Positions 5,708-27,954 of a DNA stretch of 27,954 nt are shown piece by piece. This DNA is from Geosiphon pyriformis uo1 (taxonomy: Eukaryota > Fungi > Glomeromycota): the NCBI GenBank assembly GCA_016748015.1, contig JAAOMT010000177.1, forward strand, positions 1-27,954. Direction: 5' to 3'. Made by a program: the position numbers and the translations under genes. The first letter of the stretch is position 1; every line of letters starts with the position of its first letter. The notes under the pieces were generated by a model. The model was not told where the DNA came from and made no database searches. It saw only the letters and a program-made list of their open reading frames with translations.

Positions 5708-6628
5708 ATGCTTATCACATCATCTTCGGCCGTCCTCTCTGTTTTAAAAAACACCCAAGTGATCCCGGATGGTATTTAAAACTTGGGTCAAATACTGATA
5801 TCTTTTTAGGTTTACTAATCAATTTAAAAATACTTGATAATAAGTAATCGACGAATTCCAAGAGTTAACTACATTGGCTGTTGCTTATGGTGGGGTATCT
5901 CCTCTTCGTTCTCGAGAGAATGAACAAGAAGAAGGGTCTTTGGACGTTACCATTGGAAACGAAATATCGATGGAAGGTAAGGCTATTCACGTGAGATGGA
6001 AATCAATCCCATCATGATCCATCAGCAAAATGGTTTTTTAATTACATTTTTATGGAATCTTGCTAATATGTCAAAAGCCGCTGCTGAAGCACCAAGAATT
6101 TGGTTCATGCCTGAAGAAAATAAGGCTGATTCGCAATACGCATTGTTGATGGTATGTGCTGGGTTCTTTTGGAAATCGCTTAGTCGGTTTTACCAAGTTA
6201 GTAACTTTTACTCTATTTACATTGGGAAGGTTGATCCGGATGCTCCTAGTCGTTCGAATCCAATCAACGGAGAGTGGCGGCATTGGGTCATTGGAAATAT
6301 TCCGGGTCAGTGCACATTCAATAATTTATGGTTCATATTGAGAATTTTTATAGACCCATTGTTCATCACTTTTACAAACATGATAATAGCAAATGGAAAC
6401 TTGTTTGAAGGTCAAGTTTTAACCTCCTATAATGGCCCAACTCCTCCACCTGGCACAGGTCAACACCGCTACGTGTTTTTACTGTTCAGACAGCCAAACA
6501 AGGATATCGATTATGAGCCTTTTCCTGAGGATCGAAGGGGGCTTAAGTCACGTGAATTTTCCGAAAAGTATGGGTTGACGTTGATCGGTGCTAATATGTT
6601 TTTCTGTGAAAGGAAATCAAATCAATAG
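5708..6628 (+). CDS. Phosphatidylethanolamine-binding protein (PEBP/RKIP/TFS1 family), ~194 aa; exons 5708-5771, 5845-5976, 6078-6151, 6230-6305, 6390-6628
   Basis: VIPDVIDEF, VTIGNEI, YALLM|VDPDAPSR, EWRHWVIGNI, YNGPTPPPGTGQHRYVFLLFRQ are PEBP hallmarks; four GT-AG introns give a 585-nt frame. Start codon inferred. Confidence 0.92.
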
Positions 6629-8198
6629 TATTTCAAGTTGTATATCTAGCTTAATACTTTGAAACATCTAATGATGATCATATTGAGCCTCGATAAAAGT
6701 TTCGCTTTAAGAGTGAGTAAAAAGATTTTTGGACAGGGCTAGCTTTTACATTGGAGCATTAACTGGTAGGAGTTTTCTGATATAGCTGAAAAGACTCATT
6801 TTCAATTGTGAAATCCAACTTTTGGAAATATAATATAAACCTAATGATCTAAAAATGAAACTAATTATATATATTTTTCGATCTAATTTATATTCCATTG
6901 GTAAAACAGAAACTTTTAGATTTTGAAAGCGATTAGGCAACATTATTGATATTGATTCGTCTCAAAACATCAAAAATTGACATTTTCAAAAGATAGGCTT
7001 ATATTAACATGTGATTTATTAGATATATTCTTAATTAGTATTTCCTTTTCAAATGTGGTAAAATAGAACTTTATTCTCTCAGTTCATTAAATTTTTTTTG
7101 TACTATATCAGTTTTTAAAGCTTTTAAGATTCTTTCTTTTATAATTGTTTACTAAAAATATATTGCATTTATTTGATATTTATAAGTTAAAGTTTTGGAT
7201 TTTAAGTATTTTTTCAAGATTAATTTAACCAATAAATTTAATAATTAAAATTTATTTGATTATTTTAAAAGAGCATAATTAATAATTCTTAAATGAACAT
7301 AACTTATTTGTATGTATTATATTTTATTTGAGCTTAATTAAAAATCTAAAAAAAAGACTTTTAATTAATATTAATATTAATTTCAAAAATAAGTTCAAAG
7401 TATTTATAATTACATAATTAAAAAATAATATATATTCATAATTTAATATAAAAATTTAGATTTTTATATTAATTTTTTTATTGTGGGCGAAAATAAATGT
7501 AAAACATTATAAAAAAATCAAATTTACGATTTTAAAAATCTAAGATATTAAAAATGAATTTTATTTATAATACAAATAAATTATTATTATTATTATTATT
7601 TTTAAAAAGTTGTGATTTTTAAGAATTTTTGTTATTGGTCTAATTAATTACAATTTTATTTAAAATATATTTTAATGTTATAAATTTGAAAGAAATTTTT
7701 TACAATAAAAAAAATTAATTTCAAATTTCAAAAAATAAATTGTTAAAAAACTTGTTTAAATAAAATAAATATTATAAGCTAAAATTTTTAAACTTTTTTT
7801 TAATATCAAAAACAATAGATTACAGATAAAGACACGAATTTTGTTTGTATATGTTTTAATATTAATATATGGCAGGAATATTATTTATTAAAAGTAATAG
7901 AAAAAAGACAATCTAAAAAAAATACGAAAATTTTTTTGTTACTTAATATGAGATCTGAATAATATTCACAAAACTATATTTTCATAAAATTAAATTATTC
8001 CAATAAAAAATTGTAAATACCAATACAAAATATTTATAACTCGATAATAATGTACCAATTTTTTATCTTGACAGAATGTTGTTTTTATTAAATAATAAAT
8101 ATTTTGAGTAAATAAAATATTTTTGGAATATTAAAAAATTGTGGATTAAGTCTTGTGTTAATAAATTTTAAAAAAATTAAAAATGAAAATTGAAACAA

Positions 8199-8200
<2 letters not shown>

Positions 8201-8236
<36 letters not shown>
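8201..8236. repeat. (AAT)12 microsatellite
   Basis: Twelve perfect AAT units read directly. Confidence 0.95.
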
Positions 8237-8240
<4 letters not shown>

Positions 8241-9389
8241 TTCAAAGTCTTAATATGTGAATTTACAATTTAATAATATTTGATGTTAAATACGTTTTTT
8301 TGTCAAGAATATGCATAAAATTAAAAAACATTTACGTATATTATATTATGATTTATTTTTTATTAAATTAAATTAACAAATGCTTATTTTTATGTAAATA
8401 TTAAAATAATATTTCAAGCTAATAAAAAAACATGATTTTATTGATTTTTGTTTGAAATTTAATTTAACATTTTTCTTTTTTAAGTAATAGATATATTTTT
8501 TTTAGTTTAATTATTTTTCGTATTAGTAATATCACTTTTTTAAAACTTTCTTGACTTAGCAACTGTAGATTAAAGCATTTGCAACCATATTTTTTATAAA
8601 GTGTTATTTAAGAAGGTTGATAATTTATTGATTATATATTTCAAGTATTTTTTCCCATGTGTTTTGAATTGCATTAATTTTTCTATCTTGATGTAACTAG
8701 ATATTAGATATCCAAAAATTCAATAAATTTGAGCATTTTAGGATGCAGAAAACAGATTTTTATTTATCTTTTCTTTCATGAAATTAAAATTTTCAAAGTT
8801 AGTTAAATTTTCTTTAAATAAGAAGATATTTTAAGGTACTGTGATATCATTTCATTTTGATTTTTATAAAAAGAGATTCTTATCAAGATAGGAAAATCAA
8901 AACAGAATTTCGTAATGTAAACAAATTTAATGAGACTTAAACTTATAAGAAGAGGAATAATTAAATTCCGGTATTTTAAGGATAAATAGGCAGCAGCAGT
9001 CTTAAAATAAATCATAAAATTTTATCCTTCATAAAATTTCAGATAAAGTATTTTTGAATGAATTTCAGCAGCATGATATTTTTCATGCTTTACAAAAAGA
9101 CTAAATTAGTTTTTTATTGTTGTTGTTCTTATGTACTATAGCTACTTAAAATTTATTCATATTCAGTAAGGCTGTTAGCTAATGATAAGATTAAATGGTT
9201 CAATTTATTGTGTTCACAAAGAGAAACAGCATAAATATGAACTCCAGCTTTAAGGAGTTACTTTCTAAACTTACTATTAATAAAAGCTTTTAAGAAAAAA
9301 TTTCTATTTATCAAAAATTTTCATAATAGCTATTCAATTTTATTCAAACTATAGAAACCTTGAAATTAAAAGAAATTTTTGAGAGGCTC

Positions 9390-9715
9390 ATGATTGTAAC
9401 GAGTTTTGAATACAGCATTCAAAAAAACTTGAGAATTACTGCAATTTATGCCAATTCTTGAAATTTGAAAAGCTTTAAAAGAACTTTTCAAACGGCAATA
9501 AATTAGTTCATGAAATAATTAAGAATCCAATCTATCTTCCATCTAATTGTGAATATGATAATATTTTTATTTTTATTATGAATTGATTTCATAAGAAATC
9601 TTAACAAAATTGGCGAGGGAGGGTTTGGTACAATCTATAAAGCAATAATATAAAAGAGAAGAGTGGGAAGTAGTAATAAAATTTATGAAGAAATTTTTAA
9701 AGAAATAATCAAATT
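9390..9715 (+). pseudogene. Decayed protein kinase fragment (Glomeromycota tyrosine-kinase-like type)
   Basis: KIGEGGFGTIYKA (subdomain I) at 9606-9644, EVVIK (subdomain II-like) in a shifted frame, upstream YCNLC...KNFSNGNKLVHEII resembling the CxxC/NWTSGN N-terminal segment of these kinases; in-frame stops and frameshifts; no later subdomains seen. Boundaries approximate. Confidence 0.7.
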
Positions 9716-11499
9716 ATTCTTATTTAAATATTGTTAATTTAATTAATTATCGTTTTTCACTTTTAATAGTCAAATATTTGGAGAACTATATTATTAATAA
9801 TAGTAATAACATAGACTCTATCTCTGAATTAAATAAAGCACTCGGTATGGGATTTTTAGCAATTTTTTAACTTAAAATTGCTGAAAGATATCATTATTAA
9901 ATAATAATAAAGAAAAAAAGAAGCATAAATTATCTGATAACAAAGAACCAAATTATAGCCAAAAAAAATTATTCTTTAATAAAGTAATTAAACCCAGTAA
10001 TTGAGAATGAAAATTGTTAAATATAAAACTTATTAAAAATGTTCCCTTACAAAAATATTAGTAGTTTTAAAAATAAAAACCTAACAGCTTTTACAACAAA
10101 TATTATTAGATATACTGTTATCTATTTTAATTATTTTACACGTGGTAAAGTAGATTTATTAATTTTTTTGATTTTAATAGGCTTAAATTGTTCTCTATTA
10201 TAAAATTGTTATTTAAATTTTTAAATGGCATATATACTTAGTTTATAGAAAAATAGTTTAATTTAAAACAAAAGTAAAAAGTCAAATTAACATGCTATTA
10301 ATAACATTTGACATCAGTGTTTTTAAAAGTATTAAAAAGATTAAAAGTGTATGTAAATTAGTTAATTAATTAATAATTTTAATGTTTTATTTGTATATTA
10401 ATAATTTTTGTACAACTTTATTTAAATTATTAGTATTAGAATATAAAAAAGTATTTTTTAAAACAAATAAAGAATTATTTGACTATAAAATCTATCTTTA
10501 AATTATGAAAATATATTTTACAATACATATAAGCACTTTTTTATTTGTGGTATAATAATTGTACTTGTGAATATTAAGCTTTTATTACTAGTATTAATAT
10601 ACTACTTTAAAATATTAATATTGTAAAGAGAAAATGGTTTCAAAAGTCAGTATTATACATTGAAAAATAGATTTGAAAATTAAAATTTAAGAGCAATGTA
10701 TAGAATTTAATTATATTAAATATGTTTAAGTACTAATATTTATTAAACTTTTACATATTAATAAATATATATTTCAATACATATTTATTTCTAATAAAAT
10801 CGTTAAAAATTTGTATTTTAATTTGCAAATAAAATATGTTCGTACTATTTTATATTATTAAATTAAACTTTTTATTACAATTATCTAATATTAAAACTTT
10901 GTGTTAAACATTAGAAATATTATATTTCTTCAAGGTTTAAAAAAATAATTGGTTTTTTTTGGAAAATTTTTTTATTTACTTTATTAATTATAAAAATATA
11001 TAATGCAAAAAACTATTGTATTATTACAATTCAGCATATAAAAAACTCATAATTTTTTTCTAGTATGGTATCAAAAAAAAGCAAAACATAAAAATATTAA
11101 ATTTATTAGATTAGTATAGTTTATACTACAGAAACATAATTAAATATAAGATTTTTATTGATACTATCAATATTTTATATGTTTATTACTTTTAAATAAT
11201 AGTTTTTATCAATTGTTAATTTGTTATTTCTTTGTTTATAAAACTGAATTTAAATTTATTGTTAAATATTATTATATTGCAATAAATTTATGGTAAAATA
11301 AATTTTGGTTGAGAAAATTTGTAAACCATTAGCCAAATTGTTGCTAAAATATTTTAGATTAAAAAAGTTTAATAAAGCATAAATCTATATTTTGAAATTA
11401 ACCTACATATTGATTTATATAAATACTAATCTTTTGAACTTGATAAAATTACTATTTTTAGAAAATTATATTTAAGTAGCTTAATATATTTAATTTTGC

Positions 11500-12120
11500 T
11501 GTTTATTTTTTTTTCAAAAAATAGTTATTAATATAATCATTAACTTGAATAATAATTTAATTATTAACTTAGTTATTCATTTGATCAATCATTTAATTAT
11601 TAATCTAATCAATTGTTTTTTTGAAAATATATAAGCAAAGCTTTTTCAAAGCTGTAAAAAAGTAACTTGTTCTTTTTTATATTTTGTCTTTATTAATTAA
11701 AACATCTAAGAATAAAAAATTATAATTAAGGTTTTTTTGATTTGTATTTGTGTTAGCTTTTAAGATGTATTATTGAATAAACATTTACTGAAAAATATAA
11801 ATAATATCTGTTATTGAATTTTAAAAGTGCAAATTAAAGCATAGAATTGTATTAACTGTGTTTATTAATAGTATAAGCTATTTCCTTATCTTCAAATTTT
11901 TTTAAAAAAATAACAACCAAAATATTTATGAAATTAATCTTGTATATTAAATTTATACAAATTTAATTTACTTTATATTAAATATATTTTTTTAATTAAG
12001 TTTTCAATATTTGCTCTTCTTTGCTATTTGTTAATATGTTATTTCGATATGTAACAATATTATAATTTGTTCTTAATAACAACTTTTTTGGTTTGATTAA
12101 TACCCAATTTTTTTTTTTGT
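11500..12120. repeat. Degenerate dispersed repeat, copy 1, containing a 6 x 12-bp array (11539-11610)
   Basis: Units such as ATTAACTTAGTT with 12-bp period; collinear patches match 21290-21960 in reverse orientation (agaacaaatt, aaatagcaaa, agcaaa.cttttt). Boundaries approximate. Confidence 0.55.
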
Positions 12121-12589
12121 AATACTTTTTATTTTTATAAATTTATTAATTTAAATAAAAAATAAGAAAATAAATATTATTAAATTGTTAGTTAATATTG
12201 TAAAAATTTTATTCAAAAATAATTTTATAATTATTTTGAATTTTATTTCAAATAAAAAATATATTAAATAAAGATTTTTGAAAAATTTAATATTAAAATT
12301 GATTTATAATACCTTATATAACTTTGATTAAAAATATAATATTTTATAAATAATTTAAAGTTTTGAGAAAATCAAAATGACAAACTCAAAAATATCTTAA
12401 AATATATACAGTAGATGTGAATAAAGAATCAATATAATTAATAATTTTTTAGTTTAATTATAATTATGTTAATTATTATTTGAATTCTTTTGGAATATTA
12501 ATTAGAATTACAAAATTTTGTTTACTTTGTTAATAAAAATAATATTAAAAATGATATTGAAATAGTTTATTCAATATTAAGCAAATAAT

Positions 12590-13460
12590 TTTGAAATAGG
12601 TATAGTAATCTATATATTAATTAAAAAATCAAAATGAAAGATTAGTTTTAATTTAAATATTTTTTTTTTTTGAAAACTTGCTAAGTTATAACACTATTGT
12701 TATTTGATTTAATATTTTTTATTTACCTTTTCAAAAAGAGTTTACTTTTTAATAATAAAATTTTCCTTATTAAAAGTTTTAACCAAATACTAATTAAAAC
12801 TTATTGAAAATCAAAGATAAAAATAAAATTTATAAGTTAATTGTTACATAATGTAATTGATATTAAAAAATTTCAATTTTACTAATAATAATTTGAATGT
12901 TTCTTAGGTCAAAAACTAGCATATTTTTAAAAATATATATTGGCCGAAGATAGATCGAAACTTGAGCAAAATCTTAATTTTAAATTCAAATTCCTTGCTT
13001 AAAATAACAAATTAGTCCAATATAAATATTCCATTGTAACCTAGAATTAGATAAAAAATACAGTGTATGAATTGCCCAAATATAGCTGAAATTACCCAAA
13101 AACCACCTGAATAAGATATCTCATTGTAACTTAATATTAGATAAAAAATACAGTATGTGAATTAACTTTTATATCAAGCCAGAACAGCAAAGAAAGTTTT
13201 TATTGTCACCATATGAACATTTAAGTAGTTTTAATTGTCCGCGTATGTGAATTTAAGTAAAACAAAATTAACGCTATCGGCAATTAAATGTCAATAACCT
13301 ATATACACTAGGAAAAAGTCTTTATTAGAAAAATATTAACGCTAAATTTTATTTAAAGTTTCAAATTTCGCTAGCTTGATTATCAAAAATTTATTAATAT
13401 GGTTTGTGTAATTCAAAGGTAAACTTAAAATTTATCAAAAATACAAGAATTTCAATGTGA
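12590..13460 (+). promoter_or_regulatory. Orphan (gene-less) copy of the peptide-gene upstream module
   Basis: Aligns by eye with 23062-23935 (ttcttaggtcaaaaac, gatagatcgaaacttgagcaaa, gccagaacagcaaag, aaatttcgctagcttgattat) but stops before the TATA/5'UTR/ORF. Confidence 0.75.
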
Positions 13461-13559
13461 TTTGCCATTAAGAATTTCTGATTGTTATATATGCCCAATT
13501 GTACTGATAATATACGAATTTTTTTTAGCTCAAAATCCAATTTATTTTTAAAAATATAT

Positions 13560-14278
13560 TCCTGAAGAAAATAGATCAAAAACTCCTCAATTTTAAATTC
13601 ATATTCCTTGCTTAAAATAGATTTTGCTCAAAGTGTAACAATATAGGTATTTCATTGTAACATAATATGAGACAGAAAATATAGTAAATAAATTGCCTAA
13701 ATATAACTGAAATTATCCAGGTGATCCACAAATTAGTTTGAATATAGATATTCCATTGTAACCTAATATGAGATAAAAAATACAGTATATGAATCAACTT
13801 TTAAAATAAATCCAGAACAGGAAAAGGAAGTTTTCATTGTTGGGCGTATGAAAATTCAAATAACTCAATGGGTAATCAGATATTATTGATAGAGGAAAAA
13901 ATTTTTATTAAGAAATATTAATATTAAACTTTATTTAAAGTTAACAAGTATTTCAAATATAGTCTAGTTTGATTATTAAGAAAGAGTTCAAAATTATTTT
14001 TATTGTTTGTGGATTTATAGCTAAACTTAGAATTATTACGAATACAAAAATTTAGCACTTTAATATTCTGTAAAATAAGAAAGTTATCAAGTAGTAATAA
14101 TATTAAATAAAAACTTATCAAAGGTTTTCATATAAAATGGGATGGTAAAGACGATTAAAAAAAAATTCTCTATCCACTTGCTATTGGAAAGAATTATATA
14201 AACTCAAAATTACCCAAGCACTCGATCTATATTAGCTGCCTATTTCAACCAAGCTTTTATTTGAAAATAACAGAAATC
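13560..14278 (+). promoter_or_regulatory. Upstream module of peptide gene A (repeat units, TTTTCATTGTTGGGCGTATG motif, TATAAAA at 14131)
   Basis: Highly similar to 18875-19577; the proximal ~300 bp are nearly identical. Confidence 0.75.
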
Positions 14279-14467
14279 ATGAAAATCTTACAATGTATCT
14301 TGATAAATTTTATTGTCACTATCATTTTGTTCTATGGCCTCGCATCGGCACTTCCAACACCCAACGAACTCGATGAACGCGCTGTTGCTCCTGCCGCCGA
14401 TGGTGGTCCCGGTGGGCGTCCTCCACCTAATTTTGCAACCTTTAGTCCCATAAATCATAACTATTGA
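14279..14467 (+). CDS. Small secreted prepropeptide A, 62 aa; predicted mature AVAPAADGGPGGRPPPNFATFSPINHNY
   Basis: MKILQCILINFIVTIILFYGLASA signal peptide, LPTPNELDER pro-region; paralog of B, C, D; GC-richer island in AT-rich DNA; true start is the ATG at 14279, not the TTG at 14261. Confidence 0.85.
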   Translation: MKILQCILINFIVTIILFYGLASALPTPNELDERAVAPAADGGPGGRPPPNFATFSPINHNY

Positions 14468-15276
14468 ACCGCTAAAAGTATCAAATGTAGTAAATTCAAA
14501 GTTAGGAAGGTATATTTATGCTAAAACAGAAAGTATTTCAATATCTGTTTTAAAATATATAGTTTACAGTTTGTATAAATTAACTTCTATTAGTGATTTA
14601 AGTTTTCAATTTGTATTTAGTGGCTTTATAATCTGTTATTTTCTATTTAGTGTTAAATATTGTTAATATTTAATAAATCTCTTATCAAAGATTGAAATTT
14701 TTGTTCTAAAATATATATTTAGAATAAAGCAAACAGCGAATTTTTTTTTTAAAACTAAAAAACATATCAAAAATTTTTTAAAACCATATTTTTATTGTAC
14801 ACTACCAGTTTTGATAATGTAGTATATAAATGAAGTGTGTTAGATAGGATAAGAATGATCATATTCTATTGTTTTTAAGCAAAAAAATTGTTTACTTATT
14901 CATTATTTAATACATTATTACATAGTTTTTATTTGAATCTGAAAAAAATATTTTTCGTAAAGCACCATTCAGAAGTGCATTATGCACAAAAAGATTAAAT
15001 CTCAACTTTTGTTTAAAATCAAAATTATAAGAGAAAAAACATTAGTCTTAAATTGATTCTTGATGAAACTGTAAAATTTATGGAAAGTTTTAGATAATTT
15101 TTGCTTTTAAACTTATTTAAAAGCTTGAAACCTTAATTTTACTCTTTAAAAAATTTATCTGTTTTAATTTTCTTGCTTTATTAATTTTGATAAAAATTTT
15201 TTATAAGCGTTTTTTTATTAAAGATGAATTTATTTATTTATTTTTTTTGTAATTTTTAAGATTTGAAAACTTTATA

Positions 15277-16791
15277 TCAAACTGTTTTTTGAAATATATC
15301 CCAAGCTTCTTTAATATTTTTAGCCCCTTGAAATGGTGTACAATCACCCATCTTGACTCCAAAATAAGGACCATAATGAAAAAACTCATCTGGAACATTT
15401 TCTATAGATTGCCCTGCATTGCATTCCTAAAAGAAAACATTTATCAATTGAATTTGGTTACGAAGATATTTTAAGAGAGTAAAAACCAACCATATTTTCT
15501 TCATTAGCTTGTGTGGATTTTTGTGACCGCGGAATTGAAAGATTATTACAATCCCAATATACATATTCTTTATCAGGACAATAACAATTATTTGATTGCT
15601 CGATCCAAATTTCACTACCAAAATGTTTCCAATCCATTGAGACAGGAGGATATTGAGGGACATGATCATTTCCATAGGTAATACGTTGATGAACTATTCC
15701 CTGATTCATAAGTAGACTCATTGCACTATTACCCACTCTTGGAGCTCCAAAAGTGAAAATAGCTTGACCTATTCCAGTAAAATTAGTCTCAGGCCAAAGT
15801 TTAAAACTTACAATCTTATCTCTTTCAAGGGCCCACCGAAAGCCAGCGAGTGAGGCAAGTGCTATATTTCGAAATAAAATGTTAAATATTTTATAATTTT
15901 ATTTTCAAACTAAAAAGTAGAAAGAAATATTTTATCCAACCTCCACCGATACCATGCCCCGTGAAAAACACACTTCTAATCTTTGGATTATTATTCAAAG
16001 AAGTTCGTATATTTCTTAAAAGAGAGGGAAAAATAGCGTCTATATCTTCCAACACCATTTTATTGACACGAACGTTAACTTTAAACGAAGGGAGGTGTTT
16101 CACCTGGAATAAAAGTTTTCTCTGATTTATTGAATGCCATTGTTTTTTTGTTAATTTCTAAAAAAAAAAAAAAAATGAAAAATGAAAAAATAACTTTTAT
16201 TATCTTCACCATACCCTGTAAAAATATTGAAATTTCCGATTAAGAATAGTGAGAATATTACCGGACCCGGAAAGTTTACAAACAACCAATTTAAATTGGG
16301 ACTCGTCTTAAAGACTGTAAAATCAACTTGAAAAATTTTTTACAAAAAAAAGTTTTTTTTTTTAAATCAATTCAATTAATTTTAAAATTTATTTTTTTAC
16401 CATCAAAGAGAATCAAACCTTGAAATTCATACTCTGGAAATTTTTTGCAGTATCCTTTATTTGTGAAAAATGCAAGTGGTCTATAAACCAGATAATATTC
16501 ATTCCCAATTTCCATTTGTGTTTTGGAATGCGACTTTGACCGTTTAATAATTTGACTTTTTTGTAAAGGAATTTTGATTTGATTGTTCCATTTCGTTAAG
16601 CTAGAAAAAGAGTGATTTGCCTTTTGTATTTGAGAATTTTCAAGTTGAATTTCTTTAGAAACTATCCAGCTTTTGAAATCTTGATTCATGCCAAAGCAAA
16701 ACGTGGATAATAATAAAAAAATAAAAAATAATAATTTATTTCTTTCAGAGAAATTGAATCTTTTAGCGTTTAATTTTCCAAAAGATTCCAT
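15277..16791 (-). CDS. Secreted class-3 lipase-like alpha/beta hydrolase lacking catalytic Ser, ~393 aa; exons 16791-16401, 16314-16262, 16157-15941, 15861-15491, 15426-15277
   Basis: N-terminal hydrophobic segment LLFFIFLLLSTFCFG; VFFTGHGIGG|ALA; FTFGAPRVGN; RITYGNDHVP; HFGSEIWI; ECN...FHYGPYFG. Four GT-AG introns give an intact 1182-nt frame. Confidence 0.88.
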
Positions 16792-18033
16792 TATTTTATC
16801 TGGTATAATTTTTTCAACTATTAAGAAAATTTTATTTCAGTATCATCATCATCATTTTTTTTTAATTGGGATTAGAGAAACAAAGATATTCCCACTTTTG
16901 TTTATTCCTCTGTTTTTCACGCTTATAAACGAATAAATAAATTTTATTTATGAAGTAAGGATGTGATATATTATTTTGGGAACTAGATTTCTGAATTTAA
17001 TCTAAACGTAAAAATATTTTAATTAATAATGATAAGAATTTTTATAAAAAGGAATTAATTCATAAAAGTTATAGATTTTCGATTGTTTTTAAAAACTTTA
17101 TGAATAATTTTTTATTTATTTAAGAATATCAAAAGACATAATATATGAATATTTTTGAATATATCGTTGATAAATCAAAACTTTTCGGATAAAAAGTCAT
17201 GAAAAATCAATTCGTAAATATATGAATCTTCAATAACCAAACAATTATCGTCTTCAACTACCAAGTTAAAAAAAATGTATTTTTAAGGAATTTTTGATAT
17301 GATTTTAAGTTTTTTAAAAAAATATATAATTACTTCTTTTTAATCTATTATAAATATATATTTTATGACGAAATTTTAACATTAAAAAGAGAATATTAAA
17401 TTATAATTATACCAAATAAAAAAACTGGTTTTAAAGTTACTATATACAAATTGAAAATTTTTTCTACCAAAATTTCATAAAGATAATTATAACATAATTT
17501 TCGGTGAAGGTTCCTATAATTTTTGGCGATTCAAAATTTATTTGCAAAATATATCATTTTACAAGTTCGGGTAATATAAAGCAACATTTAAACCCCTTAA
17601 TATCGAGAAATCTCTATGTGGTCTGATCTTATTTTTCATTCTAGGTATAGAATAAAAAATTTTTCAGTTATCACCTACTCGAGGCTTAATTTAAAAATAA
17701 TATATATAGTATATTATTATTATTATTATTATTATAATTATTATTCAACTCAGAAATTAATCTTTATTTTGTAAAATAACTATATTTCTAATTAAAAATA
17801 AATAATATTAATAAATTTGCTAAGAATATAATTTTATAATTTAAATTATAAGATTAACTAGTTAATTTACCATTTATTTCACTAAAAAATACTTTTGTAC
17901 TTTTCATCTATAACTCCAAAGCAACGAAATATCTTTTTAATCGATAATAATGAGTGAGCTTACAATATAGAAAAGATAACATGAAATGCAACTAACTGCA
18001 TCCATGTAATTTGGAGTTTTTGCCACATGACAA

Positions 18034-18216
18034 TTAATTACATTGGTTACAAGGTTCTTGGATGGTAATTGTACTGTGATAATTGGCATCTGGATTGGTA
18101 GCACCAATAGTACGGCGTTTACCGAGCTCGTTGGGTGTTGGGAGTGTCGAAACAAGGCCATAGAATAAAATGATAGTAATGGCAAAGTTTACTAAAATAT
18201 ACTGTAAGGTTTTCAT
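18034..18216 (-). CDS. Small secreted prepropeptide B, 60 aa; predicted mature (R)TIGATNPDANYHSTITIQEPCNQCN
   Basis: MKTLQYILVNFAITIILFYGLVST signal peptide, LPTPNELGKR pro-region with dibasic site; paralog of A, C, D. Confidence 0.85.
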   Translation of the reverse strand: MKTLQYILVNFAITIILFYGLVSTLPTPNELGKRRTIGATNPDANYHSTITIQEPCNQCN

Positions 18217-18700
18217 AATTTGTGTTATTTTTAAATAATAATTTGTTTAATATAAGTAGCTTTTATCGATCAAGAATTTGGATATTTTTAGATTATATGA
18301 TTATTCTTTTCAATTGTAAGTGGATTAAGTGTCTTTTTTAATTCCTTTTACCCGTGCTATTTTATAGAAAAATTTTCTCTAGAAAAAATTAATATCCTGA
18401 ATTTTTTTTATTACATGATTCCCAATTTGTGCAAGGTTGTTTAATTTAATTTAAAAATTTCAAGTTCTAATAATTAAATTTAGAAATTTTAAAATACTGG
18501 TTCAATTTCTGTATAACTTCAATATTCATACGCCGACAATGAAAAAATCCCTTTCCATTCTAACTTGATTTAAAAAGATTGATCTACCATACTTTATTTT
18601 CTATCTAATATTAGATTATGGGTATTCTGCTAATTTCTAGATCACCTGGATATATATTGGGCAAAATCTATTTTAAAGGAGAGAACTTGAATTTCAAAAT
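18217..18700 (-). promoter_or_regulatory. Upstream module of peptide gene B (inverted, more diverged copy; TATAAAA at 18366-18360)
   Basis: Reverse complement carries aaaatagattttgcccaa, caggtgatc, taatattagatagaaaata and ttttcattgtcggcgtatg as in the other copies. Confidence 0.7.
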
Positions 18701-18874
18701 CAATATTATTTTAAGTTTTATTGCTAAAAATTTGTATTGTTCTTATTAAATTTTACTTGAATTTTAATTTATTTTGTTAGAGTTTCATAAGAAATTTAGA
18801 ATCAAGGAAATTAAAAATTAATTTAGTATTCAAGAATTTATTTGGGTTTTTGAATTTAATTAACGAAAAATGTC

Positions 18875-19577
18875 TTGATTAAAATAGATTTTGCCCAAAT
18901 ATAACTGAAATTATTCGAATATAGTTATTTCATTATGACCTAATATTAGATAGAAAATACAGTATATGAATTGCCTAAATATAACTGAAATTATTCGAAT
19001 ATAGTTATTTCATTGTGACCTAATATTAGATAGAAAATACAGTATATTAATTGCCTAAATATAACAGGTGATCCACAAATTAGCTGAATATAGATATCCC
19101 CATTGTAACTATTATTAAATAGAAAATACAGTATGTGAATAAATTTTGGAATCATGCCAGAACAGCAAAAAGGAAGTTTTCATTGACTTAATATTAACAT
19201 TTTAAGTAGTTTTCATTGTCGGCGTATATGAAATTAAATATTATACTAACTTTAAATTTTATTTAATGTTAACACGTATTTCAAAGTTCAAAATTATTTT
19301 TATTGTTTGTGGATTCATAGCTAAACTTATTATTATCATTAATACAAAAATTTAACACTTTAATATTCTGTAAAATAAGAAAGTTATCAAGTAGTAATAA
19401 TATTAAGTAAAAACCTATCAAAGGTTTTTCTATAAAATGGGATGGTAAAGACGATTAAAAAAAAATTCTCTATCCACTTGCTATTGGAAAGAATCATATA
19501 ACCTCAAAAATATCCAAGCACTCGATCTATATTAGCTACCTATTTCGACCAAGCTATTATTTGAAATAAGAGAAATC
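18875..19577 (+). promoter_or_regulatory. Upstream module of peptide gene C (TATAAAA at 19431)
   Basis: Homologous to 13560-14278 and 23500-24134. Confidence 0.75.
18891..19139 (+). repeat. 80-bp tandem repeat: 18891-18970, 18971-19050, plus a degenerate third unit
   Basis: First two units differ at 3 positions; each contains the palindrome CTAATATTAG. Confidence 0.92.
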
Positions 19578-19754
19578 ATGAAAGTCTTACAGTATATCTT
19601 AATAAACTTTATCGTCACTATCATTTTATTCCATGGACTCACCTTGGCACTTCCAACACCCAACGAACTCGATAAACGCGGTACTACTCAGACCAACGAG
19701 AGTGGTTTCCCTACTGGCCCTTTTAAGTGGCCCCCACCCTTTGTTTATTATTAG
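19578..19754 (+). CDS. Small secreted prepropeptide C, 58 aa (not in ORF track): MKVLQYILINFIVTIILFHGLTLALPTPNELDKRGTTQTNESGFPTGPFKWPPPFVYY
   Basis: Hand translation from ATG 19578 to TAG 19754; same signal + LPTPNELDKR as paralogs; same gaaatcATG context as A and D. Confidence 0.87.
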   Translation: MKVLQYILINFIVTIILFHGLTLALPTPNELDKRGTTQTNESGFPTGPFKWPPPFVYY

Positions 19755-21289
19755 TGATGCATATTTATCTTTTAAATCTTGAGGGCTCACCCATTATTAT
19801 TGATTAAAAAGATGTTCTAATACTTTGATTTATACATAAAAGTGGAGCAGCATTTTTATATTAAATCAGTTATTTAATTTATACTTGAAATAATAAATTT
19901 TTTGTACTTTTAAATGGTTATTTTGCAAATAAAGGTTAATTCATGAGTTGAATATACATTACTTTTAAAATTGAAAAATTATTTCATCTCATATTTATTA
20001 ATTATACCTAAACTGAATAGATAATTTATAACTCTTGAATCATTAAATATAAAGTTTGCTAGTTGTAAGAAAATAATTTTTTTTGCTCTTTTAATTTTTT
20101 ATTAAAGAAAATGATCCCTTATGCCAGAATTAGCTTGGCTTTTTCAAAAAAAACTCTCCTTAATTTCCATTAATATTGCATATAATTTTATAATTCTTAT
20201 ATTTATTTTTCATAAAAAATCTTATTAATTTCACACAGATTTTAGGATATTAGCATTTAAAACGGGAAAAAATTATTAAAAAATAAAAAAGGATATATAA
20301 TATATATGCTGTATTTAATGGACAAGGTTATATTTTTATTGGCCTAACGGTAATTATTATAATACATTAAGATAAAAATGAGACAAAAATAGACGATTGA
20401 ATTAAAATTTTTACATATAAGAAAATTCTGATTCAGATCAGAACCACAAAGTGTGAAAAACCCTGCGAAATTTCTAGAAAATGAAAGCCTCTTATATGGA
20501 TTGATTTTCCTTTTTTTCATTCTAATAACTTGAATAATAAAATATTTTCATACAGTGCAAAAAGCCATAAAAGTGCTTATAATTTTACTCTACTTTAAAA
20601 TCTATATAATACTTCAATTTAAAAAATATAAATTAAAAGTGCAAGAGAATATTCTCTCGGATAAGGGTTACAAACATAGTTTTTTATTTTAATTAATTAA
20701 CTATTAGTACATGTAATTTAGAATTTAAGTTAGGTTTTATAAGTTTTGTGATATTTACATTGAGAATTTTGCAAATGTCGTTCATCAATTAAAAAATGGT
20801 ACAATTAATTCTCTTCACTAGGAAAAATTTATTATCAAACACATCTCAATTTAGTTTAATTCACAATAATGCTTAAACTTTTTAAATTTCAAAAAGGTTG
20901 CTAAAGAAAATAAGATTGCAAAACAAGAATACAGTAGTAACAAAAATTTTAATTAGAAATTACAATCTAAATCTTTTTCAATCTTTTTAAAATTATAACA
21001 ATCAATAAAAGTTTAATCGAAAATATTATGCTTTATAGAAATTTTGCCTAGAAAACTTTTTGTTCTTTTTAAAATAAATGTTTTGCATAAGAAAAAAATA
21101 TTATTTTGTATTTTAGGGAATTTTTAGTAATTAAATATAGTTTTACCAAAATTGGAACTTTATTAAATTGAAAAAAAAACTTAAAATTGATTTTAAATTA
21201 ATTCAATCTGAATTTGTTGTAGTTCTCTAAGCTATAAATTATTATGTATGAAACTTTTTGCTATTAGAAACTGTTCAAAAAAATTGATA

Positions 21290-21960
21290 AAAAAAAATTG
21301 GTTAATCACGTTGATATTAAATTAAAAGTAAGTCTATAGCATTTATTTACAAAACAATTTAAATTTCTAAAGCTATGTTTCAACAACAAAAATAGAACAA
21401 ATTTTTAACAGCAAAATACATTATTATTAAATAGCAAAAAATAATTATTAAAATAATAAAAATATCAAAGAGAAATTTTAACAAAAAAGTATATTACATA
21501 AATAAACTTCAATATACATAATTAGTTTTATAAAAATTTAAAAGTAAGATATAATCTATACTTGTTAATAAGATAATACTGTTATAATTATTTTATCTCT
21601 TATTTAGTAATTCTTAAAATTAATAATATATTTTTGTATTTTTAATTATGTCTTTATTTAATGAATTAAAAAAACAAGATAATTAATTCTTAATTAATTT
21701 TAATAATACAAAATAAGAAGAGAAAAAAGATATGTAAATTCCAATAAGTAATTTTTTATTACAAATAATGTATAAATAAATAAAAAGAGATAAAAAGATT
21801 GAATTTTAATTGCTTGATAATTATTTAATAATATTTATATAATTTAAAAAAGTTTTGCTCGTATAATTAATAAAAAAAATTAACAACCAAGTTAATAACT
21901 AAGTTAAAAATTAAATTAATAATTAAATTAATATATAATAAATTAATAAAAAATAAAAAT
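21290..21960. repeat. Degenerate dispersed repeat, copy 2 (inverted relative to 11500-12120), with a 4 x 12-bp array at 21885-21932
   Basis: AACCAAGTTAAT/AACTAAGTTAAA/AATTAAATTAAT/AATTAAATTAAT, reverse complement of the copy-1 units; collinear flanking matches. Boundaries approximate. Confidence 0.55.
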
Positions 21961-23061
21961 TTTAACTGCAATATTGTTTTTTCCAAAAAGACTAAACTTT
22001 AATAAACTCAAACTATTTATAAAAATATTTGTTTAAGGTGTTTTTTTTAACTCAAAACTAACTAATTTAGTAAAATTTTAAAAACAAAATAAAGTTATAA
22101 TAAAACGTGTTTTGACTTTAAAAGACTAAATTTTTTATATAGATTTTGGTTTTTTTAGTAATAATTATAATTTTTATTTAATTTTCAAAGTTGTTTTCTT
22201 CAAAAGCTTATATATTTCATAATTTTATCGAAATGCTTATAAAGCTTTAATTTTTTTTAAATTATTAGTTCCTATTAATAAACAAGGTTTTTTCAAGGTT
22301 TTTTTAAAACGTTTAAAAGACAATAGTATTGTTATTCTTATGTATTGAACTATTTATTTATTAATTTATTATCTGTTTTCATTTTTTTAATAAATGATAT
22401 TTAGAACTATGTTATTAATATTTAGAAAAAGTATTTTATGTTTTTTTAAACTTTTTTTAAAACTATTAATTTTTCTTGTGCAATTATTTGTGTTTTTAAT
22501 AATAATTTAAGAATAATATCAAGTTTTTTTTACAAGATGTCTTTGTATTTTTCTGTAAAAAAATAAAAATACTGTTTTAATATTCATTTTTATTGATAGT
22601 GTTGTTATTTTTCCATAGAACAGAAAGAAATATTTATGACTTGTTATAATATATTTTACAGTTTTGTAAACAAATAGTCCTAAAAGTAAAACTTTGTCTT
22701 ACAAATTTCTATCTTTACTGGTTTTTGTTAAAATATTTTATTTATTTATGAATAATAAAAATGAGATTTTTAAATTAATATTATTCAGTTAATTATTTTC
22801 TTAATTAATTACTTTTTAATTGATTTTATTTAATTTTTTTACTTATGTTATAAATTGCAATATTCAAATAACACTTTAATATTATATAGTAATTCATTAA
22901 TAATTACATATACAAATTTTTTAATTTAATCAATAATAATAATTATTTTTAATTTTTATACACTTTGAATTTTGTTTTAAATGAAATTCTGTTCAATAAA
23001 TTTCTTCTTCGTGATATTTTGTTTCAATTTAAATGTGATTTTAAATTACCAACTTAAAATG

Positions 23062-24134
23062 TTTTGAAATAGGTATTCTTATGTAATAAATTATAATAAT
23101 TGAGATTTACTTTTTAATTATATTATAATTTTTAATAATTATACATAATTTTTTTCTTATTAAAAACTTTTTTGCTTGGTTTATCACCCAATTATTGTCT
23201 TATTTTATATTCTTTTAATTTTGTTTTTGGAATATAAACATCAGTATTACTATATAATATATTTAACATATTTTATTTTATGTAAATATATTAATAAAGT
23301 TCTAACTAAATACTGATTAAAACTTATTGACTTGGAAAAACCTTATTGAAAATCAAAGATCTTTATAAATCTTGCAAAGCTAATTGTAGATAATGTAATT
23401 GATCTTAAAAAATTCAATATTACTGATAATGCTTCGAATTTTTCTTAGGTCAAAAACCACATTTTTTTAAATAAATATAATTATCGCAGATAGATCGAAA
23501 CTTGAGCAAAAATTTTCATTTAAAATTCAAATTTCTTACAAAGTAGTCCAACATAGAAAATACAGTATATGAATGCCCAAACATAACTGAAATTATCCAC
23601 AGACTAGCTGAATATAGATATCTCATTGTAGCCTAATATTAGATAAAAAATACACTATGTGAATAAACTTTTATATCATGCCAGAACAGCAAAGGAAGTT
23701 TTCATTGTCACCCATATGACATTTTAAGTAGTTTTCATTGTCGGCGTATGGGAATTTAAGTAATAAAAAATCGACTCAATCGACATTTAAATATTAACGC
23801 TAAATTTGATTTAAAGTTAACAGGTATTTCAAAAATACTTCTAAATTTCGCTAGCTTGATTATTAGAAAAGTATTAATATCGATTGTGTATTCATTGCTA
23901 AACTTAGAAGTATCAAAAATACAAGAATTCACCATGTATATATTCTATAAAAATAAGAAAAGTTATAAAGTAGTGATTATATTAAATAAAAAACCTATTA
24001 AAAGTTTTCCTATAAAATAGCACGATAACCACTTTTTTATTGGAGAAAATTATACAGTTTCAAGAAGATATAAATCCTCGATCAATATTAACTGCTTATT
24101 TCAACTAAGCTATTATTTAAAAACAACAGAAATC
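23062..24134 (+). promoter_or_regulatory. Upstream module of peptide gene D (TATAAAA at 24011)
   Basis: Homologous to 12590-13460 distally and to the A/C proximal promoters. Confidence 0.75.
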
Positions 24135-24320
24135 ATGAAAGTCTTACAGTATTTCTTGGTAAACTTTATCGTCACTATTATTTTGTTCTATGGTCTCGCC
24201 TCAGCAATTCCAGCACCCAAAGAACTCGATAAACGCCGTGCTGCCCCTGTTGTCAACAATTTGGGTGGTCCTGCGCGCCCTCCGTTTCTTACTGAAATAC
24301 TCAAAATCAAAACTTCTTAG
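24135..24320 (+). CDS. Small secreted prepropeptide D, 61 aa; predicted mature (R)AAPVVNNLGGPARPPFLTEILKIKTS
   Basis: MKVLQYFLVNFIVTIILFYGLASA signal peptide, IPAPKELDKR pro-region; paralog of A-C. Confidence 0.85.
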   Translation: MKVLQYFLVNFIVTIILFYGLASAIPAPKELDKRRAAPVVNNLGGPARPPFLTEILKIKTS

Positions 24321-25839
24321 TAGTTTATAAAACTATTTACTTTTACTTTCAAATTGAGCCTCGATCAGGTGAAACCTAAAATAAATTTCATCTCCAAAAT
24401 GAAAATTTTAGATTCTCCAAATAGATAATTCTTTAGCTGTTAAAAAAGTTTTACTAGTCGCAACAAAATGAATTTTACACCCGTGTTGTTCTTCTAACAA
24501 AATATAAAGAAAAAGCTCCCTCACGGATAAAATTAGTAGCTCAGATTTTTCTTTGTTGATGGTTAGATTTTTGATTTTCTTGACAAAATTCATTAGTTTT
24601 ACACAAATTTCAGGATATCAACGTTTAAAAACAGAAAAAATAATTAGTAAAAGATAAAATATATTACACATATTATATTTAAAGCTTTAATAATAATTAA
24701 ATAGAAATTACTCATTTTATAACTGTGAGTTATCATTTTATTCTTGAATTTACCATTAAAAATTTAACCAATTTGAAAATGTAAAATTTCATTAAATGAT
24801 TTATGAATTATCGCTCCTTTTGAGTGCTAACACACCTGGGGAAAGAGTTGAACCAATTATTCAGTTAGACCAGTTTACCTTCATAATATATATAAAATTG
24901 TAAAAGAAGCTTCATTTTTGCAGATTAATACTTAAAAAAGCTAAACTCGTTTTATTTATTTTCGGACAAAATAAAATAATAATTTCTCGGAAAAATGTAT
25001 TATTTACATTCTTTTTCGGATATTTCCGGTTAAATGTCTAGAGGTTCCAAGCTCAAAAGCATTTATTATGATACAGTAGTACAAAAATGAAACACCCATA
25101 GGTTATAGAATTTAATCTTTTACATATTATAAAATTTTAATTCCAATTAAAAACACACACAGTATAAAAAAACTTGTTTTAAAGAATTCCTAGATTGGAA
25201 AGGTTAAAAAACTGCAATATTTTTGGCTTTCATTGCAGATTATTTGCTAAATACTAAAGGAAAATACTTTTGCATCCGAAAAAAACTTGAAAACTCATTT
25301 TATATTTAACGGAAAATCTTTTACATTGCTAAATTTGAAAAGATCATGTTAAAATGCAAGAACAAAATATTTTTTGAAGATTTGATTATTTTTATTTATC
25401 CTTGTTGAACTAGAATATGGATGATTTTCATAATATTTTAAATCCATGTTAAACAATGTAAATCTTTTGTGACTATTCCTTTAGAAATCTCTTATTAAAA
25501 AATAACCTTTAATTTAAACTGGTTTCTTATATACATGTCAAAATAAATCAAATATATTCTTTGAAAGGTTCCCGAAATTTTTGACCAAAGCCCATCTGAA
25601 ATAATGTAATCGCATTATATTTCATTACTATCACACTAGTCAATCAAGTGTATATCTTATTGACCCACCACAACAAATGGTAGCTTTGAATCTAGTTTTT
25701 CCGAAGATTTTCATAATAAATACAAAGATTTATTTCAAGTAATCCCGTTCAAATTTTACAGAAAAATATTTCAAGAGATTCAATTATAGCACTTTTTGGA
25801 TGGTTATTTATACCAGACTCATTGAAAAATAAATAACTA

Positions 25840-27162
25840 ATGAAAGGAATAGAATTTTCATTTCGTCTTATAAAGAAAAACCAATTTTTTTGGATTACTA
25901 TATTCTTATGCTTGACTTTTTCAGCTACAAATTCTTCTGCTGATGAGAAGGAACCCGAGTATCCCGACGCTCCATCATGGCAATTATTTTTTTCACCTGA
26001 AAATTTAGTCGACTGGCTCAGAAACGTTCCAATGAATTTAAGGCCTACTCAAACCCAAATAACAAAGAAAACAAGTTTATCATTTTTGTACAAGGTGACA
26101 AAATTGGCGCAGCAAATTTATTGCCTGAACAATCCAGAATCGATGATTGCGCCTGGAATATATGGTAAGTGAAAGAAACATGAGATTAAACTGAAATTAT
26201 ATTAAACGAAACTAATCGAAAGATAAAATTTCGAAAATTTAGTTTGGATATCTCCTCTCACTGAAAAAATTGATTCTCCACACCAAGATAAGATCTATGA
26301 GTATTATAAGGAAAAGTGGTCAGGTGACGCAGTAGTCGCAAGGTTTAGGACTCCAGATTTAAATTATAATGAACTTATTAGCATGGGCAAAAAGCCAAAA
26401 CGGATAGCTCTTCCTTATAATACACAAGCTATGATATTAGGAGACTTTTTCACAAAATATTGGGATCTTGCAAATAATCAGATCCTTGAAAGATTAAAAT
26501 ATTATGGAAATGGATATTTGGATGAATACGATAATTTTATTTTTACTGGACATGGCGGGGGAGCAGGTAAAAGTTTAAATAAGTAAAAGATGAATTTAAA
26601 TTATTTCCCTGCCGATTAATTTTTTATTTCAATTCTTTCATAGTATTGGCAACTTTCGCGGCATTAGTTTTCCAGCATAAGTGGCCTAAAAAGAATATAA
26701 AATTGGTAACCTATGGAGCTCCACGCATAGGAAATAGCCAGTTTGTAATGTATTTACAGTCACGATTCTGGGTTGAACGAGTAACAGTCGGTCAAGATCA
26801 TGTTCCTCTATTCTTTGGAAACAAATATTTAACTCACACTGCCTATGAAACTTGGATTGCTGAAAATGAAGATTGTGATTGTTCAGATGTTGACGAGAAC
26901 GTAAAAACAGAGATATACCGATGTACCATTTTAGTGGGTGGTGAGAATAAGGTTTGGTTGAGCTTTATACTTTGAGAGGGGGGATATAATAAATTCTATT
27001 TCTCTTTCTTTTTCTCTTTACTCACAATATTTATTCAAATTTCCCCAGAAATGTAACTTAAAATTCGAGAAACCAAAACGCGAGTTTCCAGAACAAAGAC
27101 AAACTGACCATTTAGGACCATATTTCAATTATATAATGTCTCCTGAAGGATGTAGGGGATAA
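25840..27162 (+). CDS. Secreted class-3 lipase-like alpha/beta hydrolase lacking catalytic Ser, ~356 aa; exons 25840-26164, 26243-26566, 26644-26951, 27049-27162
   Basis: Hydrophobic N-terminus FFWITIFLCLTFSA; FIFTGHGGGAVLA; VTYGAPRIGN; RVTVGQDHVP; KCN...DHLGPYFN. Three GT-AG introns give an intact 1071-nt frame; the last two intron positions correspond to those of the other lipase. Confidence 0.88.
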
Positions 27163-27954
27163 GTTTTACTTCTTGAAATTAAAAGAAACAGTTTTAAACT
27201 AAACTCAACATTACCACCTATCAAATCTCTGATTTATGCATGTTTCGACCTTGGAATTTTAATTTTTTCTCTAATAATTATATATTTCATGTTAAAAAAT
27301 TTTTATTTTCAAGCGAAAATTAATGATATCTCATCATATATTTGGCGAACAATTGTTGCATTTTATTATTTGAAAATTAATTAATTTAGTGTACATATTT
27401 GTTAAAAATATTTACGATAAGTCATTTTGTTCATAATTAAAAATATTTTTTATCATCTATATAGATATAAACTGTCATATTTTATGTTAATTAGTTTAAT
27501 TCATAAATTTTTAACAGAACAAAAATAAAACTATTTGCAATAAGAATTTAGGTCTTTTAGACGTTGAAATTCCAAAAGATCACTAGTTGATTAGACCATA
27601 AAAAATAGATACAATCATCGATCCTACTCCCTAAGATCAAAAAATTTGCTTATAGAAGTACTTTCTATAATATTATATTTCAATAACAAAATAGGGCAAT
27701 TTTCAAGTGAAGTAATTTATAAGATTGTAGAAAGTAACATACTATATATATTCATAAAAAAAATTATCTCCTGAAAAATTTTAGCTTTTACTTTATAATT
27801 GATCATAATTGATCATTTGTATTCAGGTTATCTGGGCTATGTTTTTTACTTTTTGATCTATTGATATATTTAAGTCTATAGTAAATAATATAAGTGGGAA
27901 ATTGGTTAGATTGAATGTCACATATTCCCCACTTTTAAATTTGTTTCATTTTTA

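Follow-up and report, generated by a model that had tools for sequence, protein, structure and literature searches.

The window, a stretch of 27,954 nt from a contig of Geosiphon pyriformis uo1 (JAAOMT010000177.1), carries four short open reading frames (ORFs), A to D, which together with a fifth copy on another contig, E, form a low-copy gene family whose members share a 34-residue leader followed by strongly diverged tails. The chances are judged to be about even that A–E are lineage-restricted, stand-alone, single-exon genes for prepropeptides of the Kex2-processed type, each encoding a peptide built around a PP(P)F core. This reading is carried by the ORFs themselves, their paralogy and low copy number, the moderate constraint on the leader, the core motif in the tails, an exon-like base composition and the presence of a kexin gene in the genome.

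A family of short ORFs with a common leader

The four ORFs of the window had been listed in a preliminary description of this DNA made from its letters, and all of them were found exactly as listed, in the ORF list and in the alignment (Table 1). Over the first 34 residues the alignment is free of gaps, with 19 invariant columns and 74–82% identity to A. The consensus proposed earlier for this leader is broadly right and departs from the copies in its last residues, since A ends in D-E-R, B in G-K-R and the segment of D reads IPAPKELDKR. Directly after the leader the similarity collapses, as had been stated, and it does so sharply in the protein as well as in the DNA. The BLAST matches between A and C, A and B, B and C, and C and D stop 0–13 nt past the last leader codon, and pairwise MAFFT alignments calculated per region gave, for every pair, a nucleotide identity of 77–87% in the leader and of 31–51% in the tail. 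Most flanks fall, like the tails, to 31–51% with many gaps, the upstream identity of D and E being distorted in these per-region counts by misalignment. B is the most divergent copy of the family.

The genome-wide profile search proposed in the preliminary description was run with a hidden Markov model of the leader against the six-frame translation of the 128-Mb genome. It returned six loci, with E-values between 1e-18 and 1e-24, and no further match under 0.1, so the similarity between the leaders is not a matter of chance. The six loci correspond to A, B, C and D, to the new paralogue E (contig C727) and to a second, identical D on contig C337 (16.8 kb). The earlier inventory was thus correct for A–D and had overlooked E, the linkage to Lipase_3 genes and the GenBank model in which D is fused to one of them. 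The D block of C337 is 100% identical to the window over ~1 kb and therefore adds no independent gene; the flanks of this shared block are unrelated. Positions 1–2135 and 6450–8584 of C337 are both 100% identical to window positions 25820–27954, in opposite orientations, in a comparison with window positions 23583–27954. This contig, a partly palindromic near-copy of the window end, may be a palindromic duplicate or an assembly artefact.

A DNA search of the same 128 Mb with 1 kb around C recovered the same loci and one upstream-only remnant on contig C513. A match to a transposon end had been named at the outset as an observation that would speak against a gene family; a transposon terminus is ruled out, because the 1-kb unit occurs only at the six gene loci and as the C513 remnant. 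The unit is a low-copy gene family.

Predicted precursor architecture and processing

The five ORFs have a common layout, formed by an MK n-region, a hydrophobic core of ~18 residues, Gly-Leu, a small-x-small site (ASA, AAA, TLA or VST), L/I-P and a polar piece of 10 residues that runs to KR or KRR. By inspection, residues 3–24 have a mean Kyte-Doolittle hydropathy of 1.6–2.2 with small residues at -3 and -1, and the leader looks like a cleavable signal peptide. KR is found in B, C, D and E, extended to KRR in B, D and E. The claim of a signal, a short pro-region and a KR site consequently holds for the architecture as inspected and for the site itself in four of the five copies, A being the exception. 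The genome encodes a kexin, recognized by a P_proprotein domain (C608:604583-604753, 53 bits) with the C-terminus of a kexin-like catalytic domain just upstream and in the same frame.

In the mechanism proposed here, A–E would encode prepropeptides of 56–62 residues. The N-terminal 24 residues would act as a signal peptide for the endoplasmic reticulum, cut after the small-x-small site, and kexin would then cut off the 10-residue pro-piece (LPTPNELDKR) in the Golgi, at KR or KRR. This would free a linear peptide of 22–28 residues, mostly cysteine-free and rich in Pro and Gly, with [G/S]P-x2-3-PP(P)F as its constrained part, which would serve as an extracellular ligand of the signalling or effector type. 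Signal cleavage, Kex2 cleavage and secretion of the products are in this sense predictions from sequence. The length range of 24–28 residues given earlier for the tails becomes 22–28 across the family with E included. The predicted peptides contain 0–2 cysteines and have a net charge of -1 to +3; as they are not uniformly cationic, a plain antimicrobial reading is not favoured.

Constraint on the leader, base composition and flanking sequences

Each of the five leaders is complete and in frame from its ATG, with no stop codon and no indel at a nucleotide divergence of 13–23%, whereas the DNA around them is full of indels in the pairwise and multiple alignments. The ratio of non-synonymous to synonymous substitution rates (dN/dS) of the leader is 0.19–0.61 across copies (dS 0.2–0.74), away from the value near 1 that had been set down beforehand as contrary evidence, with moderate significance. 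The minimum numbers of changes at codon positions 1, 2 and 3 are 15, 7 and 19, and the depletion of second positions (binomial P=0.017) indicates that the reading frame of the leader is the constrained one. Between A and C, the two copies that have no lipase remnant downstream, the leader still differs by 7 synonymous and 6 non-synonymous changes, which speaks for independence of the peptide genes from the lipases. Taken as a whole, the substitution pattern argues for a purifying constraint of moderate significance on the leader.

The composition of the ORFs is set apart from that of their surroundings. GC fractions are 0.37–0.41 in the leaders and 0.38–0.52 in the tails, against 0.20–0.27 in the 300-nt flanks and 0.15–0.25 in the introns of the neighbouring gene; in gene A the leader has 0.38, the tail 0.52 and the flanks 0.20–0.24. 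The flanks hold ~8.7 stops per 100 codons.

Conservation extends beyond the coding region. A block of ~75 nt lies directly 5' of the ATG in all five copies and is probably the 5' untranslated region (UTR) or the core promoter. Further out, ~125 nt upstream, the copies have a TATAAAAT box in common, a conserved TATA box; the CTATAAAAT motif found there in D lines up with its counterparts in A, B and C. On the other side, C and E share 77% identity over the first 100 nt of the 3' flank, which has stops in all frames and is probably a 3' UTR. Since this flank is common to C, E and B, the duplicated unit covers the whole gene and the tail would be a fast-evolving island within it. The idea that the 3' flank common to B, C and E contains a second coding exon was discarded on account of the stops in all frames, and so was a candidate donor overlapping the stop codon, which would splice straight into another stop.

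An 80-nt unit is repeated in tandem 2.2 times (96% matches) at window positions 18891–19065, 500–700 nt upstream of C. Relatives of it are found at 12874–13206, 13496–13840 and 23553–23664, and A and D, too, are preceded by duplicates of related upstream blocks. The unit is a possible repeat of the promoter region.

Divergence of the tails and the retained core

The tails of A, C, D and E share a [G/S]P-x2-3-PP(P)F core that is absent from B. The pattern PP.?F occurs in four of the five tails; composition-preserving shuffles put the joint probability of this at 4e-5, a figure to be read knowing that the pattern was picked with the data in view. Aromatic residues and proline abound in the tail of C, whose last residues are WPPPFVYY. 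The codons of the core prolines differ among copies (CCT CCA CCT, CCC CCA CCC and CCT CCG), which argues for retention of the core at the level of the protein.

Codon alignments of the tails gave pN values of 0.38–0.60 and pS values of 0.38–0.74, corresponding to a dN/dS of roughly 0.4–1.9 at saturation. The tail dN (0.5–1.2) exceeds the leader dS given above, with a tail dS of 0.5–3.2, in alignments that are short, gapped and partly frame-shifted. A tail dN above the leader dS would fit accelerated evolution, and turnover by indels and frameshifts would fit equally well; in the proposed history the tails would have diverged much faster than the leader, partly by such indels and frameshifts. 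The diversifying selection put forward in the preliminary description is not borne out, as the tail dN/dS is saturated and the changes of frame also fit relaxed constraint. Its term hypervariable is right about the divergence of the tails and overstated in view of the PP(P)F core kept in four copies.

The sharpness of the boundary may have a further source. Between A and C, the 300 nt upstream are 91–93% identical compared with 87% in the leader, and gene conversion or a recent duplication ending at the leader may contribute to the break seen there.

Expression and the possibility of silent duplicates

One public RNA run, available as contigs only and with no library type recorded, was inspected over window positions 14000–19999. 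A single 688-nt contig was found, which covers 15281–16111 (minus strand) on the neighbouring pseudolipase 1 with the two introns given in Table 1; because this contig is spliced, the run is RNA. None of its contigs lies on A, B or C, with the limit that contigs show presence and not absence and that D and E were not covered. Lack of transcript support is the main weakness of the finding, and transcription of A–E is presumed from the sequence.

Several other observations weigh, together with this one, against genes for secreted peptides. The five exact peptides are absent from 15 billion called proteins, Logan assemblies included. A has ER in place of the dibasic site. The tail dN/dS of ~1 at saturation also fits an unconstrained tail, homologous 3' ends are read in different frames (A versus D and C versus E), and the GC-rich tails are also open in other frames and on the opposite strand. 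Finally, the leader substitutions are transition-biased (133 transitions versus 36 transversions summed over pairs), and at a kappa of 3–4 the synonymous excess reaches only P ~0.05–0.08 in two independent contrasts. Such a bias among the leaders would fit a deamination-type mutation pressure, and it weakens simple dN/dS tests.

These points bear most directly on the alternative that survives best, to which a minor though appreciable probability is given: A–E would be silent or decaying duplicates, relics of a once-functional small gene or of its first exon that were duplicated together with the lipase cassette, and would owe the likeness of their leaders to recent duplication or conversion instead of selection on a protein. 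The missing contigs on A, B and C, the near-neutral tails with their differing frames and the dN/dS signal that becomes marginal once transition bias is allowed for are all expected of relics, and the higher identity upstream of A and C than in their leaders fits a conversion or recent duplication tract ending at the leader. The loss of KR in A and of the core in B points the same way, and both copies may be decaying or changing function. Relics would not be expected to keep five leaders with ATG, frame and neither stop nor indel at 13–23% divergence amid indel-rich flanks, nor to show depleted second codon positions (P=0.017). Tails with 38–52% GC against a background of 20–27% and a PP(P)F core that survives synonymous changes also argue against decay and for prepropeptide genes.

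Linkage to Lipase_3-like pseudoenzymes and the GenBank fusion model

Two Lipase_3-like ORFs lie next to the peptide genes in the window. Their nucleophile elbow, GHSLG, reads GHGGG in lipase 2 (aligned to the solved lipase 6unv) and GHGIG in lipase 1. Since lipase 1 is transcribed and spliced all the same, a conserved family of non-catalytic, secreted Lipase_3-like proteins is suggested. A lipase paralogue follows each of B, D and E on the same strand at a distance of 0.8–1.6 kb (~1.3 kb between B and pseudolipase 1), and this shared position indicates that the ancestral duplicated cassette held both genes. The family would then have arisen by segmental duplication of a cassette made of the peptide gene, a spacer of ~1 kb and the Lipase_3 pseudoenzyme gene. 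A and C have no lipase remnant downstream. In the C513 cassette a 1.1-kb piece with the peptide gene has been lost, and the lipase (C513:33361 onward; 83% DNA identity to lipase 2) has been kept intact, with its own ATG and signal. In the pseudolipase downstream of E (C727:199386-200646), the first exon region is interrupted by two in-frame stops. An obligate pair of peptide and pseudolipase, of the ligand-receptor or toxin-immunity kind, is unlikely, given that A and C are without a lipase and the C513 lipase is without a peptide.

The only database protein with the leader, in a HMMER search of 1.8 billion representative proteins, is a 342-residue GenBank model that joins D to the lipase, with two cluster mates; an exact look-up returns the GenBank proteins KAG9297898, KAG9302725 and KAG9297897. 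The preliminary remark that such short genes escape annotation is confirmed in that A–E are absent from protein databases save for this fusion, four of the five copies being missed and the fifth fused to its neighbour; small secreted peptides are systematically missed by annotation. In the models KAG9302725 (window) and KAG9297898 (C337), D positions 24135–24267 are joined to 25925 onward, so that codons 1–44 of D run in frame into the Lipase_3-like ORF in the 342-residue and 335-residue models. The implied intron of 1657 nt has GTCCTG as donor at 24268 and AG as acceptor at 25923–25924.

Taken at face value, these models would make the leader ORF an alternative first exon that gives a signal peptide to the downstream pseudoenzyme, most of the supposed mature peptide being intron. 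The position of B, D and E upstream of same-strand lipases would agree with it, and weak donors are conceivable at this locus, where the RNA-supported ones are themselves non-canonical (GTTGGT and GTTGGA), so the donor sequence alone is insufficient to dismiss the fusion. This possibility is nevertheless considered unlikely, and the fusion is probably a chimeric prediction artefact. Each lipase comes with a conserved ATG and signal of its own, and the acceptor falls inside that signal; where D is missing upstream, as for P0003, the annotation of this same lipase begins at its own start. The introns known locally measure 64–97 nt, conservation of the donor position does not extend to the other copies, and the stretch after KR has 38–52% GC against 15–25% in real local introns. 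In addition, A and C have no same-strand lipase downstream, the C513 lipase uses its own start with no peptide gene before it, and among the representative proteins searched only the D model contains the leader.

A possible uncleaved leader and comparison with known systems

The leader could also be functional in its own right. In membrane-anchored micropeptides it would remain as an uncleaved transmembrane helix with invariant N10, T14 and G20 and a loosely constrained tail behind it, and might for instance regulate a membrane protein. Conservation does peak in the 18-residue hydrophobic stretch, invariant polar residues are unusual for a mere signal peptide, and the tail is near-neutral and tolerates frameshifts. 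The helix-breaking Gly, the small-x-small site and the conserved polar pro-piece up to KR form instead the classic layout of a cleaved signal followed by a Kex2 site, and a PP(P)F core is kept in the tail. Young, tandemly duplicated secreted-peptide families typically have highly conserved signal sequences, which takes weight from the first of these points. An anchored micropeptide is accordingly regarded as improbable.

In line with the preliminary description, no named family was found to match A–E. A protein word-index search with C gave no candidate, Pfam returned nothing for any of the five ORFs, the best score of an ESM Atlas feature search (0.79) was at noise level, none of the 600 pattern hits of a metagenome contig scan was confirmed, and Rfam gave no match over the whole window.

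Glomeromycotina have an abundance of secreted peptides processed by Kex2 (PMC6339444, PMC5293756). Fungal Kex2-processed repeat proteins (KEPs) and alpha-factor-type precursors (PMC6339444; PMC5293756, Kamel et al. 2017) resemble A–E in the predicted signal, the pro-region, the KR/RR site and the short linear peptide; alpha pheromones release peptides of 9–24 residues, compared with the 22–28 predicted here. By definition a KEP has three or more tandem repeats with Kex2 sites between them (PMC6339444, Le Marquer et al. 2019), whereas A–E have a single KR and a single C-terminal peptide each and fall outside that definition. In contrast to alpha-factor-type precursors, A–E are devoid of repeated Ste13 X-Ala/X-Pro spacers and their peptides diverge among paralogues. 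A STE2-type receptor (PF02116) gave no match in the six-frame genome search, a search made exon by exon and without a control genome match, and its absence weakens an alpha-pheromone reading. A homologue of the STE3-type (lipopeptide pheromone) receptor is present at C642:334886-335808 (148 and 75 bits).

Conotoxins, amphibian skin peptides and legume NCR peptides also have a prepro region far better conserved than the mature part, and their genes are likewise very short, duplicated in clusters and prone to escape annotation. The likeness is one of architecture and not of homology: A–E have no cysteine framework, count five members and keep a core, and positive selection is not demonstrated for them, in contrast to conotoxin-type families, the tail dN/dS being saturated near 1. 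The defensin-like fungal precursors of plectasin and copsin agree in the predicted signal, the pro-piece, KR and one C-terminal mature peptide; with 0–2 cysteines, the CS-alpha-beta fold is impossible for A–E, and their charge of -1 to +3 is not uniformly cationic. Insect peptides of the apidaecin/drosocin type are short, cysteine-free and Pro-rich and are freed from secretory precursors by dibasic cleavage. The RPP and PPP motifs present in the family may recall them, without homology; three of the five family peptides are neutral or acidic, unlike the strongly cationic apidaecin and drosocin. The closest known kind appears to be the fungal Kex2-processed secreted peptide precursor, so that the family itself would be new and its kind known.

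Precursors of ribosomally synthesized and post-translationally modified peptides (RiPPs), in which the conserved leader would be the recognition sequence of a tailoring enzyme and the variable part the core, would share the layout and the Pro and aromatic residues of the core, and are hardly credible here: UstYa/DUF3328 (PF11807) gave no genome match (again exon by exon and without a control genome match), there is no repeated core peptide, the larger ORFs of the window (a phosphatidylethanolamine-binding protein, the Lipase_3 pseudoenzymes and otherwise unassigned ones) have no tailoring-enzyme domain, and the predicted signal peptide is unlike the cytosolic precursors of the MSDIN type. The missing UstYa match and the lack of repeated cores weaken the dikaritin type in particular.

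A possible role in the cyanobacterial symbiosis

To our knowledge, no fungus other than G. pyriformis harbours cyanobacteria within its cells. The species is closely related to the arbuscular mycorrhizal fungi, and small secreted peptides are prime candidates for signalling to a partner. A speculative extension of the prepropeptide reading, with a slim chance of being right, is that A–E are host-made symbiosis peptides, delivered by the secretory pathway into the bladder symbiosome or released around hyphal tips, which recognize or control Nostoc and diversify with the partner; they would be to this fungus what NCR peptides are to legumes. Possible targets in Nostoc would be hormogonium or primordium behaviour, growth and differentiation. 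The family is tiny and its architecture is the only functional clue. If expressed, A–E constitute an additional peptide family, lineage-restricted and with PP(P)F as its defined core, which is directly testable on Nostoc; if silent, the locus is still a useful case of micro-genes undergoing birth-and-death evolution and of a public gene model that is probably chimeric.

Features of the locus

The positions of the genes and of the conserved elements around them are collected in Table 1.

Table 1. Peptide genes, lipase-like neighbours and conserved flanking elements. Positions refer to the window unless a contig is given.
Feature	Position	Strand	Description	Located by
Gene A	14279..14467	+	62 codons; leader 14279-14380, D-E-R end; 28-residue tail 14381-14464 with GP..RPPPNF	
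Gene B	18034..18216	-	60 codons; leader 18216-18115, G-K-R end; 26-residue tail with CxxC and without PP(P)F	
Gene C	19578..19754	+	58 codons; leader 19578-19679, D-K-R end; 24-residue tail	
Gene D	24135..24320	+	61 codons; leader 24135-24236, D-K-R-R end; 27-residue tail with GGPARPPF	
Gene E	C727:198401-198571		56 codons; tail C-terminus NPPPFIRI	Six-frame genome profile search
~75-nt conserved block, A	14204..14278	+	Directly 5' of the ATG	Alignments
Equivalents of the ~75-nt block	C 19503-19577; D 24060-24134; B 18217-18291 (minus)			Alignments
TATAAAAT box	24011..24018	+	124 nt 5' of the start codon of D	Alignments
3' flank of C	19755..19899	+	Also in B at 17829-17982 (minus) and in E	
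Lipase_3-like pseudoenzyme 1	15281..16791	-	GHGIGG; transcribed and spliced; introns 15427-15490 and 15862-15940	
Lipase_3-like pseudoenzyme 2	25840..27189	+	GHGGGA, Gly at the position of the nucleophile Ser; own ATG and signal peptide	

Away from the peptide genes, an ORF at window positions 5996–6628 (plus strand) contains the phosphatidylethanolamine-binding protein domain (PBP, 54.7 bits) and is an ordinary neighbour; parts of it look like intron read-through. Between the gene islands, the GC content drops to 14–23% in the stretches at 7001–13000 and 20001–23000.

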